Part shown: positions 11,011 to 26,973 of the stretch, one piece after another
How positions within the stretch are numbered: position 1 is the stretch's first letter
How the letters are laid out: each line of letters begins with the position of its first letter
Virus record (IMG/VR): IMGVR_UViG_3300027899_000001
Location: 248,001 to 312,000 of that record
Length of the DNA stretch: 64,000 nt
Strand: one strand, 5' to 3'
The notes under the pieces: model-generated
The model's input: the letters and a program-made list of their open reading frames with translations, nothing else
Database searches by the model: none
Told to the model about the DNA's origin: nothing
Made by a program: the position numbers and the translations under genes

Positions 11011-11676
11011 TTATTTATCAGTTTTAAATTTGCAATTTATAAAATGATATCTTATCATATTTGGGCCTCTACCTATTAAATTACAATATGGGCATATTAG
11101 TGTTTTAAAATTTTTAGGTTTTCCTTTTCTTTTTAAAGACATTTCATCTTTAATTTTTTTAGCTCGTTCTATTCCAAATATTTCTTCATATGTTTTACCA
11201 GTATTTTCTTTTGCACGTTTAACAATTCCATACGATTGATAATTTTTACCATACATTCCATTTTTTTCTCCTTTTATATCATTAGAATGCTTAATTTTTC
11301 TTTCTTCGGTATAATTAGATTTTAATGTTTCAGACATTTTAATTAACGTTTCATTTGAATGTTTTTTTCCAAACATGCCATTATCTTCTCCAAAAAACGC
11401 ACCGCCTACTGCATCATTTTTTAAATTATAATATAATGGATTATTTTTGGCATCTACTTCTTTTAATGTTTTATCTTCTATTTCTCTAAATTTATTTCCT
11501 ATATAAAGTATTTTTCTTTCAAAATTATCAACTCCGTATTTTTTAATAGCATTTATAAACACAGTTCCTGATCCTATATAATTATCTTGAACATCTCCAA
11601 GATGTGATCCTATATATTTTTTTCCATTTATATTATTTGTCCATTCGTAGACAAACCCACAATCATCATTAATCAT
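11011..11676 (-). mobile_element. Free-standing GIY-YIG (Seg-like) homing endonuclease
   Basis: 'GFVYEWTNNINGKKYIGSH...YIGSG...' plus NUMOD3 'GMFGKKHS' repeats. Confidence 0.8.
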
Positions 11677-11682
11677 TAGCTA

Positions 11683-12384
11683 TTATACATTATATTTTAA
11701 AAAATCTTTTCGAGTTATACAGGCATTACCAGTTTCTATATAATGTTCAAGTAAATAAAATTGTTTTTCATATAAATGTAAACTTCCACTATTCCATATA
11801 ATTGCTCTTTTATTTATATGTAAATCATCACCCAATTTGTCTAAGATATATTTATGCCATGCGTAATCATTTCTATAGCCTGCCCATGCATCATTAGATC
11901 TCATTAACACATAAGAATATAAAATATTATTTCTAATCAAAAATTGAACAGCATAAGTACACATAAAATCATTTTTATTATTTTTATTATAATCTTCCCA
12001 CATAGTAGGACGATTATAAATCATTACACCTCGTCTTGAACTTTTTTGTTGTGTTAATTCTGTTAAACAATTTTTATATTGATAACCATTTTCTTTTGAA
12101 AAAACACACCAACCATAATTAGAATTTATAAATCCGCTTGGGTCTGCGACGTTTTTCCATATTGTAGGCGTATTTTTTATATCATTAACATTCAAAGATT
12201 GAGATAAATACCAATCAAGTTCATTTTTTACATATTCTTCATTAGTTTTTCCAAATATATATGATTCATCTGCTATAAATTGTGCACATATAAGATCAAT
12301 AACTTTTCCACCAAATTTATCAGTTTCAAATTTTTGTTCTTTATATTTTTTAACGAATTGATTTCTGATATCTTTTACTTTCAT
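11683..12384 (-). CDS. gp42: dCMP hydroxymethylase (T4 gp42-like, thymidylate synthase fold)
   Basis: 'INSNYGW', catalytic 'DFMCT', 'MRSND...GYRNDYAW', 'IIWNSGSLHLY' closely parallel T4 gp42 as recalled, including the dCMP-specifying Asp in RND. Confidence 0.85.
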   Translation of the reverse strand: MKVKDIRNQFVKKYKEQKFETDKFGGKVIDLICAQFIADESYIFGKTNEEYVKNELDWYLSQSLNVNDIKNTPTIWKNVADPSGFINSNYGWCVFSKENGYQYKNCLTELTQQKSSRRGVMIYNRPTMWEDYNKNNKNDFMCTYAVQFLIRNNILYSYVLMRSNDAWAGYRNDYAWHKYILDKLGDDLHINKRAIIWNSGSLHLYEKQFYLLEHYIETGNACITRKDFLKYNV

Positions 12385-12393
12385 AGTTTTTAT

Positions 12394-12603
12394 TTATTTT
12401 TTATATCTTTTATCTTTTAATAGTTTCACTGCATATGAAGATAGTTTTTCTAATTGAGATAAATTCATCTCATAGATAAACTCTTGAAGCATTTCAATTT
12501 CAAGAGACATTAAATATTCATTATCTTCTTTATCCTTTGGTTTCATTTTCTTTGTATATTTCCCAATCAAATCCAGAAAGATATTCTTCATATGTTTCTT
12601 CAT
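12394..12603 (-). CDS. Hypothetical protein (true start possibly downstream)
   Basis: ORF track; overlaps the neighbouring Zn-ribbon ORF. Confidence 0.4.
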   Translation of the reverse strand: MKKHMKNIFLDLIGKYTKKMKPKDKEDNEYLMSLEIEMLQEFIYEMNLSQLEKLSSYAVKLLKDKRYKK

Positions 12604-12730
12604 CTAAAACATAATCCCAATAATAATATGCATTTTTGCAATTCGGGCAATCTCCTGAATCGTAATCTTCAACTTCAAATATATAATTACAAATGGGACA
12701 AGTTAATTCATTCATTTTTTTATTCATCAT
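12530..12730 (-). CDS. Small Zn-ribbon protein
   Basis: CPIC...CPNC. Confidence 0.6.
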   Translation of the reverse strand: MMNKKMNELTCPICNYIFEVEDYDSGDCPNCKNAYYYWDYVLDEETYEEYLSGFDWEIYKENETKG

Positions 12731-13010
12731 GATAAACTATCCATGCAATATCATCACTATCAATTTTAAATGATCCGTCATCTTTTTCTCCATCAACTTC
12801 TGGAACTTCAGGAAGTTCTATTGGATAATCAAAACTAACTTTAGGATGAAAAGATCCATCTCCATCAGCATAAAATGCACAAAATCTTGAAGCTCCTGCA
12901 TTTCCAAGGCGTTCCATATATTTAAACATTTTCTTTAATGCTATTGCATCAGCAGGTCTAATATTATCAATAGTGATAACTAACTTATGTTCTTTTCTTT
13001 CTAGTGCCAT
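12720..13010 (-). CDS. Hypothetical protein
   Basis: 96 aa ORF in a tightly packed operon. Confidence 0.6.
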   Translation of the reverse strand: MALERKEHKLVITIDNIRPADAIALKKMFKYMERLGNAGASRFCAFYADGDGSFHPKVSFDYPIELPEVPEVDGEKDDGSFKIDSDDIAWIVYHDE

Positions 13011-13013
13011 ATT

Positions 13014-13268
13014 TTATTTGTGTAAATATTTTTTAACATTCATTTCATGAGCTACATTTCTTTCTACATCATAATCACTATGAATTACAATTGTATATGT
13101 TAACGCCCATATAAACCAATATAAAGTATAAGTTCTTGTAAGCCACCATCCTTGAACATTTTTCATGTAATCAAATTTTGGAAGCCATTTATTCCACTCA
13201 AAAGTGGGATAATCTTTAAATCCTATTGGCGCATACCAATATCTATAAAATTTCAACTTTCTTCTCAT
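13014..13268 (-). CDS. Hypothetical Trp/Tyr-rich protein
   Basis: 84 aa ORF. Confidence 0.5.
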   Translation of the reverse strand: MRRKLKFYRYWYAPIGFKDYPTFEWNKWLPKFDYMKNVQGWWLTRTYTLYWFIWALTYTIVIHSDYDVERNVAHEMNVKKYLHK

Positions 13269-13569
13269 TTTCTAAAGTATTATTTGTTTCATCTTGTTTT
13301 ACAGATGGCGAGCAATTAAGATACTCAAAAGCAAACATTTTACGAGTAAATTTTTTACTCCATCCAAAGTGTTTTGCTAATAAATTTACAGCCCATTCAT
13401 ACCATTCATCATGTTGAGCTTGAGTTACTTCATATTTTTTATAAAATGCTCGAAAATCTTTTTCACCCACCCATTCTTTTTCTACTTGAGCTATTGTTGT
13501 GTTATGATAAGGAACTAACCAACCATCTATTAAATCATCAAGAGTTGGCTCCTTTTTTCTTGTTCTCAT
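13243..13569 (-). CDS. Hypothetical protein
   Basis: 108 aa ORF with an ATGA overlap to the kinase. Confidence 0.55.
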   Translation of the reverse strand: MRTRKKEPTLDDLIDGWLVPYHNTTIAQVEKEWVGEKDFRAFYKKYEVTQAQHDEWYEWAVNLLAKHFGWSKKFTRKMFAFEYLNCSPSVKQDETNNTLENEKKVEIL

Positions 13570-14180
13570 TTTACAAATTGTATTACTTCTTTTAATATTT
13601 GTTTTTTAGATCTAAACGCAGTTTCTTCCATAACAACTACTTCATCTACTTTTAACATAAGTTTATTTTTTATTTTTGAAAAATCATGTGCTTCTTTAAA
13701 CAATTCAAGTTCTTTAGTTTTTTGTTCTAAATTTTGTGAAAAAGAATCGCCATCTTCTTTAAGTAAAAAGAAATAAGGATCTGCTGTTAAAGTAATAAGA
13801 TATATGTCAAATTTATTGTCAACATAAGGTAATTCAGTAATTTCCCAGTTCATTAATTTATTTTTCAAAAAATTACCATCTACGTTTCTAAACATTTGAC
13901 CATATACATATTCTCCTAAGTGTGATCTATTCCATATAATTATGTCTTCATAATAATTATATCTAGAATAGCAAAAAACATTTTTAATTTTATGAACTAA
14001 TTGAATTTCATTATCAAAACATTTAAATTGATAATCTAAAGTTTCTTCAACAGTCATGCCTTTAGGAGGTTTTCCAAAATGTCTTATTGTAATATTATTA
14101 TAATCAAACTTTTTACAAATACCTTCAATAAGAGTAGATTTACCAAGTCTATCTCCCCCCTCGATCACAATGAGTTTCAT
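13566..14180 (-). CDS. Deoxynucleoside monophosphate kinase (thymidylate-kinase-like P-loop)
   Basis: 'IVIEGGDRLGKST' P-loop; 'WNRSHLGEYVYG' DR-type motif. Confidence 0.8.
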   Translation of the reverse strand: MKLIVIEGGDRLGKSTLIEGICKKFDYNNITIRHFGKPPKGMTVEETLDYQFKCFDNEIQLVHKIKNVFCYSRYNYYEDIIIWNRSHLGEYVYGQMFRNVDGNFLKNKLMNWEITELPYVDNKFDIYLITLTADPYFFLLKEDGDSFSQNLEQKTKELELFKEAHDFSKIKNKLMLKVDEVVVMEETAFRSKKQILKEVIQFVK

Positions 14181-15069
14181 ATTTAATAAATTTTTTATTA
14201 TATCTTTCTGTAAATATTAATTTTTTATCTTCTATTAAATTTTTTATTTCTTCAAAAGATACTTGTTTTACACATTCAGTTAATTTATATTTAAAATTTT
14301 GTTGTTTACAAAATACCTCAGCGGCTTCTTTTTTTCTTGCAACTGTATCGCTATTCCATAATTTTTTAGGCTTAATTTCTATTAAAAATTTATCTTCAAT
14401 TAAAAAATCTGGATAATACGTTCTTTTGTTTCCGTTATAGTCAATATATTCAATTTTATATTTCTTTTTTTCAGCTCCTTCCCATTTTAAATTAAATCTT
14501 TCAATAACATATATCATATATGATAATTCTTTTAGAGATCTAAAAAACCACCCTTTATACCAACCACTCCAACCATTACCTGAACCCTGAGGAGAAGGCT
14601 TACCATACATATTATTTTTATCGCCTTTACGAGATTCACTATAATGTTGTCGTAATCGTTTACCTGTTTCTTCACCCCAGATTTGTTCAATGGTTTTTCC
14701 ATTTTGATCTAATGAGGCCCATCCATGCGAATATTTACCACCAAAATTTGCATTATTTTTTCCACTATTTGCTGTAGAATTTTTTTCTTTAGCAATAATA
14801 GCACCATCAATTCCTAAAATTTCTTCTAATGTTTTATTTTTTAAACTTTTATTATATTGAATTAATTTATTAGAATTTCGAATGCCTTCTTTATATTGCT
14901 GTTTATTCTTACAGCTTCTGCATAAATCTTTATAATATTTCTGAAATCCTAGTTGTTGATTTAATAAAGAAGAATCCCATATATTATCACATTCATCACA
15001 TTGAATTATTATTCGTTGTTTATTAGTTATTGTAGAATTTTTTAATTTAATTACTTCACTTAAAATCAT
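14149..15069 (-). mobile_element. Homing-endonuclease-like protein (Zn finger + NUMOD3-like repeats + TnsA-like PD-(D/E)xK nuclease)
   Basis: CDEC/CRSC; 'NNMYGK'; 'YYPDFLIEDKFLIEIKP'. Confidence 0.7.
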
Positions 15070-15094
15070 GTTTTATTCTATATATTCATAATTT

Positions 15095-15136
15095 TTATTC
15101 AACTCTATCTCCATCTTCAATAATTATTAATTTCAT
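15095..15136 (-). pseudogene. Stranded 5' remnant of the dNMP kinase gene (MKLIIIEDGDRVE*)
   Basis: Hand-translated; aligns with the kinase start MKLIVIEGGDRLG; ATGA-coupled to the upstream small ORF. Confidence 0.75.
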
Positions 15137-15276
15137 TTTTTCTCTTTAAGTAATTTTTCTAATTCTTTTTGTTGAGAATAATTAAGTGTATGTTTAGACT
15201 TTAAGTATAATAACCATGAAAATCTATCTTTTAATCCAGTGTCTCTTGCAAAAGATGCAGATTTAAGTATAGCCAT
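15133..15276 (-). CDS. Small hypothetical protein (47 aa)
   Basis: Hand-translated MAILKSASFARDTGLKDRFSW...KEKK*; its stop overlaps the remnant ATG. Confidence 0.45.
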   Translation of the reverse strand: MAILKSASFARDTGLKDRFSWLLYLKSKHTLNYSQQKELEKLLKEKK

Positions 15277-15397
15277 TATAATGAATTTTTAAGTATTTCA
15301 ATTAATTCATTTTTATCAATATATGTTCTTATATCTTGGGTATTCCAATATGCTTGTCCCTTATCTATTAATTCAGTACGCATTCCATTTATTAGAT

Positions 15398-15811
15398 TTA
15401 TAACTTCATCAAGTGTAAAAGTTTTTCACTTGATATAGTTAACGGTTCATTAACTGTTTCTTCTGAATTTATTGTAGGCGGGTGAGTCATATATATTCCA
15501 TATTTATCAACTAATTTAAGAAAAGCATCTTCAATACAGTTTGAATCTAATGTTCCATTTTTTAAATTAACTAAAGTAGAATATGTACTACTATCTAAAT
15601 TAGTATATCCTTGTTGACTAAATGACGCATGAGTTCCTGGCATTCCAGGAGGACCTTGAATTCCTGTCATTCCCGGTTGACCCACAGGTCCTACACTTCC
15701 TGAAATTCCTTCAGTTAATAAACTTGCTCTTACGTAATTTTTCATCCATTGTTCTTTTTTATCATCAATTGCATTAGTTTTTAATCTCGGTTCAATACTT
15801 GTATATCCCAT
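15398..15811 (-). CDS. Hypothetical protein with a short collagen-like (G-X-Y)n tract
   Basis: GISGSVGPVGQPGMTGIQGPPGMPG. Confidence 0.6.
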   Translation of the reverse strand: MGYTSIEPRLKTNAIDDKKEQWMKNYVRASLLTEGISGSVGPVGQPGMTGIQGPPGMPGTHASFSQQGYTNLDSSTYSTLVNLKNGTLDSNCIEDAFLKLVDKYGIYMTHPPTINSEETVNEPLTISSEKLLHLMKL

Positions 15812-17022
15812 TAGAATAAAGATTTTGATTTATTATTTAATTCTTTTGTATTATCCTGCATATAAACAGATTGAGTAGATAATGTACGATTACCTTTTAT
15901 TATTTCAACTATTTCTCGAGTTACATCCTCACATGTGCAAACTGGAACATTTTGAGTTATTTTAGGATATTCCTTTATACTTTCAAGTTCATAATCATGA
16001 GGTAATCCCATCAGGTGCATATATTCTCTTATATTAATAAGTCTATCCTCTGAAGGATGAAGTGTTCTATTCATCATCTCAGATATCACCGCGTACACAT
16101 AATCTCTATCTAATCCAAGAACACGATATCCAAGTCTAAAATTTTTACCCATCTCAGTCTTTTTAATAACATGAGCAGTATTCTTTTTAACTATATTAGA
16201 CGCGTTCGGTAAAGTTTCAAGAAAATCTTTAAAATCATATAATAATCCCTGTCGTTTAAGATAATCGTATGAAGTTAAATGAGTTTTATATGTTTTATAA
16301 ATTTCATTTTTCCAATCAGTTCCATATATTTTTTTAAAGAATTTTGTTATTTCATATTCATTTACATCTGAATCTTCATTCATATATTTATCTTGATAAC
16401 TTGCTCTTTTAGGTATATCTTTTAAATATTTAGAAATATTTGGCATCGGTCTATTATATGAATGTAATATAGGAGCGTATTTACCTTTTAGAAATATTGC
16501 AAATGTACGAGGACGAAATTGGGGAATTCCGTGCTTTATCGTATTTGTTTTATAAAATGTAACTGCATAATCATTTGCTTCAGCAATTTTAATAAGATTA
16601 TTTCTTACATCTTCTCCACTGCCTGTATAAAGGCCCGGAGCATTTTCAAATGCATAAATAGTTGGACTTAAAAAATCTAAGATAAAGACTGCTGATTTAT
16701 ACATCCATTCATTTGGTTCTGCAGTTCCTCTTGAACCCTTAGGACGTTGTGCAGCTTGAGATAATCCAGAACAAGGTGGAACTGCTGTGACAAAATCAAG
16801 ATTTTTAGAAAATTCTTGTAGTTTATGAACTTCGTTATCATTCATATTATCTAATTGAATATAAGGCACATCGTGTCCTTTTTTCAAAAGATATCTTCTC
16901 AATAAATCGTCATTAGCTTTAAAAGGAGTATAGGATGTAATTGCCAGAGGAGGGCTTCCTATTATATTCATATTTCCAAGAGCAAAACCTCCAGCAAGAG
17001 GTATATGTGCTATGTAACGCAT
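15811..17022 (-). CDS. DNA cytosine-C5 methyltransferase homolog with a divergent motif I
   Basis: Motif IV 'PPCSGLS', VI 'ENAPG', VIII 'GIPQFRPRTF', IX 'RLINIREYMHLMGLP', X 'QNVP'. Motif I reads 'IPLAGG' instead of FxGxGG. Confidence 0.75.
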   Translation of the reverse strand: MRYIAHIPLAGGFALGNMNIIGSPPLAITSYTPFKANDDLLRRYLLKKGHDVPYIQLDNMNDNEVHKLQEFSKNLDFVTAVPPCSGLSQAAQRPKGSRGTAEPNEWMYKSAVFILDFLSPTIYAFENAPGLYTGSGEDVRNNLIKIAEANDYAVTFYKTNTIKHGIPQFRPRTFAIFLKGKYAPILHSYNRPMPNISKYLKDIPKRASYQDKYMNEDSDVNEYEITKFFKKIYGTDWKNEIYKTYKTHLTSYDYLKRQGLLYDFKDFLETLPNASNIVKKNTAHVIKKTEMGKNFRLGYRVLGLDRDYVYAVISEMMNRTLHPSEDRLINIREYMHLMGLPHDYELESIKEYPKITQNVPVCTCEDVTREIVEIIKGNRTLSTQSVYMQDNTKELNNKSKSLF

Positions 17023-19928: not shown

Positions 19929-19939
19929 GAATATATAAA
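19929..19939 (+). promoter_or_regulatory. Putative late promoter motif GAATATATAAA
   Basis: Exact 11-mer 8 nt upstream of the endonuclease ATG at 19947. Confidence 0.5.
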
Positions 19940-19946
19940 ATAAAAA

Positions 19947-26946: not shown

Positions 26947-26957
26947 GAATATATAAA
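26947..26957 (+). promoter_or_regulatory. Putative late promoter motif GAATATATAAA (divergent pair with the variant at ~26918-26930)
   Basis: Exact 11-mer 17 nt upstream of the ATG at 26974. Confidence 0.5.
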
Positions 26958-26973
26958 ATAAAATATTACTACT

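Follow-up and report, generated by a model that had tools for sequence, protein, structure and literature searches.

A homing-endonuclease-like gene at the Walker A codons of a phage kinase gene probably brings a duplicate gene start that keeps the kinase whole

We analyzed a 64,000-nucleotide stretch of viral DNA (hereafter the window), comprising bases 248001–312000 of IMG/VR record IMGVR_UViG_3300027899_000001, which spans 405,016 bp, carries direct terminal repeats, and originates from a freshwater metagenome. Within the window, a nuclease gene lies between two copies of the first codons of a thymidylate-kinase-like gene. The arrangement is probably that of a homing endonuclease gene that entered the kinase gene at its Walker A codons, with a duplicate start that keeps the kinase whole while the old start is left stranded upstream. 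The window is AT-rich (27.6% G+C), and every gene of the finding, namely the remnant, the nuclease, the kinase, and the open reading frame (ORF) upstream, is on the minus strand. In the order of transcription, these are a 47-amino-acid (aa) ORF, a 13-codon remnant, a 25-nt leader, a 306-aa nuclease, and a 204-aa kinase, with the following window coordinates:

15276–15133, minus strand: upstream ORF of 47 aa, whose TGA stop is shared with the ATG of the remnant (ATGA).
15136–15095, minus strand: 13-codon ORF closed by TAA (MKLIIIEDGDRVE and stop), the kinase gene's original start left stranded, recognized by repeat similarity and by collinearity with the element-free locus L224.
15094–15070, minus strand: leader of the nuclease gene with the recurrent box TATATAGAATAAA, recognized by motif enrichment and by conservation in relatives.
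15069–14149, minus strand: free-standing homing-endonuclease-like gene, 306 aa, ORF of 921 nt, assigned from Pfam, PHROG, alignment A2, and an AlphaFold2 model.
14180–14142, minus strand: replacement 5' end of the kinase gene, codons 1–13, MKLIVIEGGDRLG, recognized as a repeat of the remnant and from codon statistics.
14180–13566, minus strand: working thymidylate-kinase-like gene, 204 aa, assigned from Pfam PF02223, PHROG 761, and alignment A1.

The remnant reads ATG AAA TTA ATA ATT ATT GAA GAT GGA GAT AGA GTT GAA TAA and the working kinase opens with ATG AAA CTC ATT GTG ATC GAG GGG GGA GAT AGA CTT GGT. The 2 copies are identical at 27/37 nucleotides and at 9/12 residues, their longest exact match is 9 nt, and the similarity stops inside the Gly codon that precedes the Walker A Lys. 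The sequence features that an earlier reading of this DNA from its letters alone (the original prediction) had described were all confirmed on the minus strand: the remnant, at 15136–15095, is ATGA-coupled to the preceding gene, and the kinase start, at 14180, falls within the last 32 nt of the nuclease ORF (14180–14149). The nuclease gene and its promoter-like leader thus sit inside the kinase gene, between Gly13 and Lys14, and the original 12 to 13 codons remain upstream as a dead remnant that has kept its ATGA coupling to the preceding gene. The 3' end of the inserted block supplies a diverged second copy of the first codons in frame with the kinase body. With this copy in frame, neither RNA splicing nor protein splicing is required for translation of an intact kinase. 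At 37 nt the repeat is short, and the DNA is AT-rich, as might be expected if the similarity resulted from chance or misassembly. However, of the shuffled peptides matched to the upstream region, 0/200 scored as well (z 10.9), and a second IMG/VR record is identical to the locus across 8.6 kb. A 46-kb Logan contig also contains the whole stretch with 0 differences, although it possibly derives from the same sample and is thus not independent support. Finally, the same architecture was found in seven independent contigs from other samples. The layout of the locus is no assembly artefact, and chance or misassembly has a negligible probability as the source of the similarity.

The working kinase matches Pfam PF02223 (Thymidylate_kin; 29.7 bits, cut-off 27) and PHROG 761, and 221 homologues of it were found. 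It retains all 33 invariant columns of alignment A1 (36 homologues, consensus start MKLIIIEGGDRLGKST) and carries an N-terminal Walker A motif, GDRLGKST, at residues 8–15. By score the protein is thymidylate-kinase-like; the "dNMP kinase" label of the original prediction stays a guess as to substrate.

A DNA search of a phage collection with window positions 12700–16000 gave no match, and the relatives found in that collection by protein search were all below 35% identity, so relatives were taken from metagenomes. About 25 element-free kinase loci were present in viral contigs, in which the kinase starts with ATG AAA CTA ATA ATA ATT GAA GGA GGA GAT AGA TTA GGA AAA or near variants. The nearest kinase relative is in L224, a 156-kb scaffold that is syntenic with the window and carries a DUF5661 gene, a C5 methylase gene, a 129-aa ORF, and the kinase gene. 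The comparison with element-free relatives that had been proposed to check the prediction bore it out, because in L224 the kinase ATG and the stop of the preceding ORF share an ATGA at the very place that the remnant occupies in the window. L224 shows one collinear alignment to the window's remnant together with the final part of the ORF before it (15168–15094) and a separate one to the working kinase (14180–13830), and the C-terminal part of the window's 47-aa ORF aligns to the last part of the 129-aa ORF found before the kinase in L224. Likewise, in a contig from a sediment metagenome (approximately 83% identity), the gap between methylase and kinase is 410 nt, versus 2031 nt in the window.

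Seven other contigs carry the nuclease at the kinase locus (L004, L006 with the near-identical L138, and L217–L220). Their nucleases are 66% to 71% identical to that of the window, and the kinase start overlaps or abuts the nuclease stop; the distant L037 also carries a nuclease at this locus. The genes upstream vary (radical SAM, methylase, and others). Remnant DNA precedes the nuclease in all seven contigs, with the leader TTGAATAAAAATCATGAATATATAAAATAAAAC or a variant form between them, and the remnants of the window and of the seven contigs all break within the same Gly codon before the Walker A Lys, which substantiates the proposal that the insertion lies in the conserved P-loop-coding site. 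The remnants have decayed to different degrees: they are frameshifted in L004 and L220, and in L006, L218, and L219 only the 3' half is left and the start is gone. Between L004 and L006 the remnant 3' halves are almost the same, but they do not resemble the working 5' ends of the kinases at these loci. Since the upstream genes of these 2 loci differ, this indicates that the 3' half moves with the nuclease. Altogether, the nuclease is sporadically present or absent at the homologous kinase site.

These comparisons bear on whether the insert could be an intron or intein-like, with the remnant serving as an exon 1 that is spliced to the kinase body. Joining the remnant end (...GTT G) to GT AAA TCT does keep the reading frame. 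However, an Rfam search of positions 12500–16500 gave no match even at E <= 1, the nuclease ORF does not share the frame of the kinase, a TAA stop closes the remnant, and Pfam finds no Hint/intein domain. A complete second kinase start is present, and the frameshifted or startless remnants of the relatives imply that splicing is unnecessary, as had been predicted for the window and as the complete set of invariant residues in the working ORF also indicates. We consider a spliced insert extremely unlikely.

The nuclease matches Pfam PF08722 (Tn7_TnsA-like_N; 34.7 bits, cut-off 26.5, residues 205–263) and PHROG 15427, which is named "endonuclease", and has 1189 homologues at E <= 0.001, apparently forming a large, uncharacterised, phage-borne family. 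Alignment of 37 sequences (alignment A2) revealed an N-terminal CxxC...CxxC pair (zinc finger), two NUMOD3-like repeats, a GSGNGWSGWYKGW-FRS-KELS block, and a PDF...E-I-K motif. Three residues, E181, E231, and K233, do not vary in this alignment, and D221 hardly varies. The AlphaFold2 model has a predicted local distance difference test (pLDDT) score of 87, and in a full structural scan its best match to a solved structure was TnsA (1t0f, Z 8.2, nuclease residues 158–304), with other PD-(D/E)XK nucleases ranking below. Among nine neighbouring proteins scanned, there was no match to transposase families, and neither tnsB/tnsC partners nor a Tn7-like context were found. Judged from these predictions, the protein is a free-standing homing-endonuclease-like nuclease with a zinc finger, NUMOD3-like modules, and a C-terminal TnsA-like PD-(D/E)XK domain, and a putative site-specific DNA endonuclease whose predicted catalytic residues are intact. 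The same phage encodes a distant, shorter paralogue of 224 aa (30% identity; G000:C1:326755-327360, minus strand; L003 1426–2100, minus strand) with NUMOD3-like repeats and a YQPDF...VEIK motif, followed by a 69-aa ORF and then by a 194-aa ORF that has no P-loop at its start.

To place the window locus within the nuclease family, we used 161 loci with a complete nuclease ORF, which form 121 clusters at 90% identity, 97 of them with a same-strand gene directly downstream. GK[STGN] or SKT occurs within the first 55 residues of 64/97 of these downstream genes (66%), versus 27/345 other ORFs of the same loci (7.8%; Fisher p 5e-31), and a strict Walker A pattern in 45% of the downstream genes versus 1.7% of the background. 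The distance from the nuclease stop to the start of the Lys codon has a median of 34 nt (interquartile range 29–40). A remnant was scored when a significant stranded copy of the downstream N-terminus ended 100 nt or less from the nuclease ATG; a DNA-level screen overlooked diverged remnants (L004, L006), and we used a protein-level screen and direct reading instead. Significant remnants were found in 22/62 P-loop loci and 0/32 other loci, 12 to 89 nt from the nuclease ATG, and 15 of the 22 matches extend to within 2 residues of the Gly before the Lys. Examples are L067 (remnant MLLNKFKGRLVIFEGEDHCG, ending at the break, versus downstream start MLLNKFKGKLICLEGQDHCGKTT) and L116 (remnant MSHKRIIFVGSTFSG, likewise, versus MSHKRVIICGATCSGKTY). 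Remnants occur in at least six unrelated P-loop gene families with the same break point, the targets of the family being polynucleotide-kinase-like, thymidylate-kinase-like (that of the window), classical thymidylate kinase, AAA_28, guanylate kinase, helicase, and APS-kinase-like genes. In the polynucleotide-kinase-like targets of L083–L087, L166, and L190 (e.g., L083 3390–3926), a 5-nt indel distinguishes the remnant from the copy downstream of the nuclease, and no open frame starts before a GTG or TTG close to VTGSGKST, a point at which the gene may be damaged.

Some nucleases of the family precede 5'-3' exonuclease or C5 methylase genes instead, and no remnant was detected there. Targets cluster in the catalytic-domain tree (26 changes versus 47 with shuffled labels), which also contains well-supported target switches, and the clade of the window spans both kinase types. 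Near-identical catalytic domains are found beside unrelated targets, as in L126 (5'-3' exonuclease, start ...LLVDGNNL) and L134 (C5 DNA methylase, start ...LSLFDGISCG) and also in L114, L124, and L110; in the exonuclease and methylase targets alike, a conserved motif falls among the first 15 residues. This modularity of the catalytic domain suggests that the variable N-terminal region sets the target of the nuclease.

In six loci, the nuclease lies between the two halves of an AAA ATPase gene broken at the Walker A motif (L123 1167–4121; L210 341–3457; L179, L182, L185, and L208). The upstream gene ends in ...G(M/K)PG|C plus about 25 residues, and the downstream gene starts with about 110 to 130 intein-like residues ending in IVSHN|(T/C)GK(T/S), the intein being atypical. 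By its sequence features, this subgroup shows the "fractured gene" layout, in which nucleases of this type have not been reported. Since the insertion is again at Walker A, the subgroup supports the interpretation that the family consists of homing endonucleases aimed at P-loop DNA, and it suggests that gene-end replacement is the solution where the motif lies near the gene start.

The 2 kinase starts of the window differ in codon usage. G+C content at third codon positions (GC3) is 0.131 pooled over the window's 55 long ORFs and 0.109 in kinase codons 14–204, and the remnant codons are all common in this genome. The atypical GC-rich wobbles that had been noted in the working start were confirmed: five of codons 3–8 are rare members of their synonymous families (CTC, 2% of Leu codons; GTG, 6%; ATC, 6%; GAG, 6%; GGG, 5%), and the number of G/C-ending codons in the new 5' end is reached by just 0.74% of all 13-codon windows. 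The last nine residues of the nuclease (ETHCDRGGR), encoded over the new 5' end, are absent in all relatives of alignment A2. This indicates that the 32-nt overlap is a read-through that puts no coding constraint on the wobble positions of the kinase start. Of 19 element-free alleles, 15 resemble the remnant more closely than the new 5' end (Wilcoxon p 0.003). Recoding as a family-wide rule was considered and rejected, the rare-codon cluster being limited to the window locus and a few others (L064, L149, L140).

A second kind of difference is a Gly8-to-Ser change (ESGD), which is present in 6/7 occupied alleles versus 13/120 kinase homologues and is polyphyletic in the kinase tree. Among the homologues P0001–P0120, ESGD appears in at least 6 separate places of the tree, with Ser standing before the second Gly of E-G-G-D. 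The change requires at least 2 base changes and may mirror repeated escape from the nuclease or past occupation. Use of Gly8-to-Ser as a marker of occupied alleles was rejected, because four ESGD alleles that were looked up had no upstream nuclease and the change is hence not diagnostic. The rare codons of the window and the Gly-to-Ser change in most occupied alleles are no more than suggestive of a new 5' end that resists cleavage. The reduced identity of the 2 copies would be explained by selection, acting either on self-cleavage or on loss of the element through recombination between the repeats.

Several observations weigh against the interpretation of the locus as a homing endonuclease gene that carries a replacement kinase start. 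No remnant is detectable at 40/62 P-loop loci, and many family members may therefore merely adjoin their target gene upstream. The L224 allele matches the remnant at 31/37 nt and the new 5' end at 30/37 nt; since it is about equally near both copies, the new 5' end is not clearly foreign. Both points, together with the remnant-free loci beside exonuclease and methylase genes, would be expected of an ordinary intergenic, free-standing homing endonuclease gene located directly ahead of the kinase, whose remnant is a one-off scar, with no working role, of imprecise repair in which the kinase start was duplicated, the new 5' end being the donor's or the resident's own gene start. Such an account is at odds, however, with the recurrence of remnants in 22 loci and at least six gene families at a constant Gly|Lys break and short distance from the nuclease ATG, and with the near-identity of the L004 and L006 remnant 3' halves despite different upstream genes and working 5' ends. 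We regard it as unlikely. Also adverse to the favoured interpretation is the comparison of GC3 between new 5' ends and gene bodies across 58 occupied genes, in which the mean difference of 0.01 is not significant and equals that of 21 element-free alleles. In addition, the Gly-to-Ser allele is present without a nuclease in L221–L223 and in the contig of P0022, a Foldseek search against the PDB gave weak TnsA matches (E about 0.1), and the sequencing runs that contain the sequence were two DNA metagenomes, with no RNA run.

The leader that separates the remnant from the nuclease contains the box TATATAGAATAAA at 15084–15072, 2 nt from the nuclease ATG. The corresponding motif, TATATA[AG]AATAAA, is found 19 times in the window versus 6.4 expected (0/100 shuffles reach 19), and at 12 of the 19 sites an ORF of 40 aa or more opens with an ATG 2–38 nt downstream. 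Enrichment and placement before ATGs indicate a real recurrent signal of this phage, which is a candidate promoter or leaderless-start signal of the phage group. The box that had been described as late-promoter-like thus exists and recurs, and it is at most a candidate late promoter. Other sites are, for example, 18271–18259 and 12405–12393 (minus strand) and 19932–19944 and 26950–26962 (plus strand), mostly 2–14 nt before start codons, and nuclease leaders in other contigs carry TATATA[AG]AATAAA too. The last bases of the remnant and the leader also give TTGAAT-16 nt-TAGAAT (15102–15075), a sigma-70-like arrangement that matches the consensus at 9/12 positions; in a sigma-70 scan of the region, matches were not enriched (19 found versus 16.3 expected). 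The leader TTGAATAAAAATCATGAATATATAAAATAAAAC is kept in L004, L006, L058, L139, L140, L217, and L218, and in a looser form in L219 and L220. We call the leader promoter-like because of this conservation and not because of the sigma-70 scan.

That the remnant abuts a conserved promoter-like leader, and that its last bases form the -35-like TTGAAT, could point to a different role, in which the nuclease has been domesticated or is a regulator, either an autorepressor acting on the remnant as a half-site or a factor in phage competition or defence without homing. I-TevI represses its own promoter via a site that resembles its homing site, which would fit such a role. Nevertheless, the catalytic residues are conserved and none is lost, homologous loci have or lack the nuclease sporadically, and near-identical catalytic domains stand beside unrelated targets (L126, L134), as expected of a mobile modular endonuclease. 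A regulatory role also leaves the duplicated gene start unexplained, and we consider it very unlikely.

Homing into the kinase gene, the interpretation we favour, would proceed as follows. The enzyme would cut element-free alleles at or near the P-loop codons, and repair would copy the block from an occupied genome, with the remnant providing the left arm of homology and the kinase body the right arm. As both arms lie inside the target gene, spread would require no neighbouring genes in common. Substitutions in the new 5' end, here the five rare synonymous codons and in most relatives the Gly-to-Ser change at the matching position, may shield the occupied allele from cutting. The same substitutions may lower recombination between the repeats, which would delete the element. 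More tentatively, and with slightly less than even confidence, we propose that this is a third general route into essential phage genes beside introns and inteins, taken by a TnsA-like nuclease family specialised on Walker A codons near gene starts, which would bring a replacement start, use the remnant as its left arm, home between phages without common neighbours, and hop between unrelated P-loop gene families.

The nuclease has as neighbours the kinase gene, small ORFs, a C5 methylase gene, and a thymidylate-synthase-like gene. The spacer between methylase and kinase holds three small ORFs in the window (15398–15811, 15276–15383, and 15133–15276, all on the minus strand) of 137 aa (with a collagen-like Gly-X-Y stretch), 35 aa, and 47 aa, one ORF of 129 aa in L224, and almost nothing in L219 and in the sediment-metagenome relative. 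This differing content indicates that the spacer is variable. A second homing-endonuclease-like gene, of the SegE type with GIY-YIG and NUMOD3, is found at 11011–11676 (minus strand), directly after the thymidylate-synthase-like gene (11683–12384, minus strand), so that this nucleotide-metabolism cluster contains at least two different selfish nucleases.

If our interpretation holds, a selfish nuclease can enter the most conserved motif of a needed gene without splicing, a duplication of about 13 codons being a cheap rescue where the motif lies near the gene start. The nuclease would represent a candidate new homing endonuclease family that counts more than a thousand homologues and whose catalytic domain is TnsA-like. 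The target, P-loop codons in several families of kinases and ATPases, is easily read, and thus recognition by the modular zinc finger and NUMOD3 region is directly testable. The family would also employ two arrangements that are already known, gene-end replacement as in fungal mitochondria and the split-intein "fractured genes". For annotation, short stranded ORFs upstream of such nucleases would be gene scars, and the N-termini of phage kinases may be mosaics.

Literature searches, with incomplete journal coverage, returned no TnsA-like homing endonuclease, no P-loop targeting by free-standing endonucleases, and no replaced phage gene starts. The best sequence-family (PF08722) and structural match of the nuclease is TnsA, a Tn7 transposase subunit (PDB 1t0f, 1f1z). 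Unlike TnsA, the window nuclease has no TnsB/C/D partners or transposon ends, and it combines a zinc finger and NUMOD3-like repeats with the context of a homing endonuclease. Homing by means of a restriction-endonuclease-like PD-(D/E)XK fold is known from the intron-encoded I-Ssp6803I and I-Bth0305I (PMC3424549, PMC3239194). The catalytic domain of I-Bth0305I is a weak structural match to the window nuclease (Z 4.5), but both enzymes belong to other Pfam families and neither has a duplicated exon end.

Free-standing homing endonuclease genes that split phage genes are known from the T4 family, including mobE in Aeh1 nrdA, mobA between genes 39 and 60, and a seg gene in gene 43 of phage 25 (PMC2988022). 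As in the window, these genes lie in coding regions at functionally critical sites without an intron. The T4-family host gene, however, yields two polypeptides that must reassemble, whereas the window kinase would stay in one piece with a short end replaced; duplication is not mentioned in that review (PMC2988022). In "fractured genes", a free-standing endonuclease gene lies between the halves of a split intein (Dassa et al. 2009, PMC2677866). They too are phage or metagenomic cases of an endonuclease gene inside a conserved enzyme gene that brings its own control elements. The window locus differs in having no intein and in keeping function, as we propose, via a 13-codon duplication. The endonucleases of fractured genes are GIY-YIG and Vsr-like, with no mention of TnsA in PMC2677866.

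By analogy of layout, the closest known counterpart of the window locus is the fungal mitochondrial mORF with a replacement C-terminus. mORFs make "gene hybrids" in Allomyces macrogynus atp6 and in Glomus atp6, atp9, cox2, and nad3; the mORF inserts with a foreign C-terminal copy that displaces the native one, and in atp6 and cox2 the native segment is unexpressed (PMC3630166). mORF nucleases are LAGLIDADG or GIY-YIG enzymes, in contrast to the TnsA-like PD-(D/E)XK nuclease of the window with its phage host and Walker A target, and common descent is therefore not implied. What the two share is a free-standing endonuclease ORF within a conserved gene, an in-frame diverged duplicate of a gene end, and a displaced native end, with no splicing. 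The window locus appears as the mirror image of the mORF: in the window the replaced end is the 5' one, with the native start displaced upstream, whereas in the mORF case it is the 3' one, with the native C-terminus found downstream.

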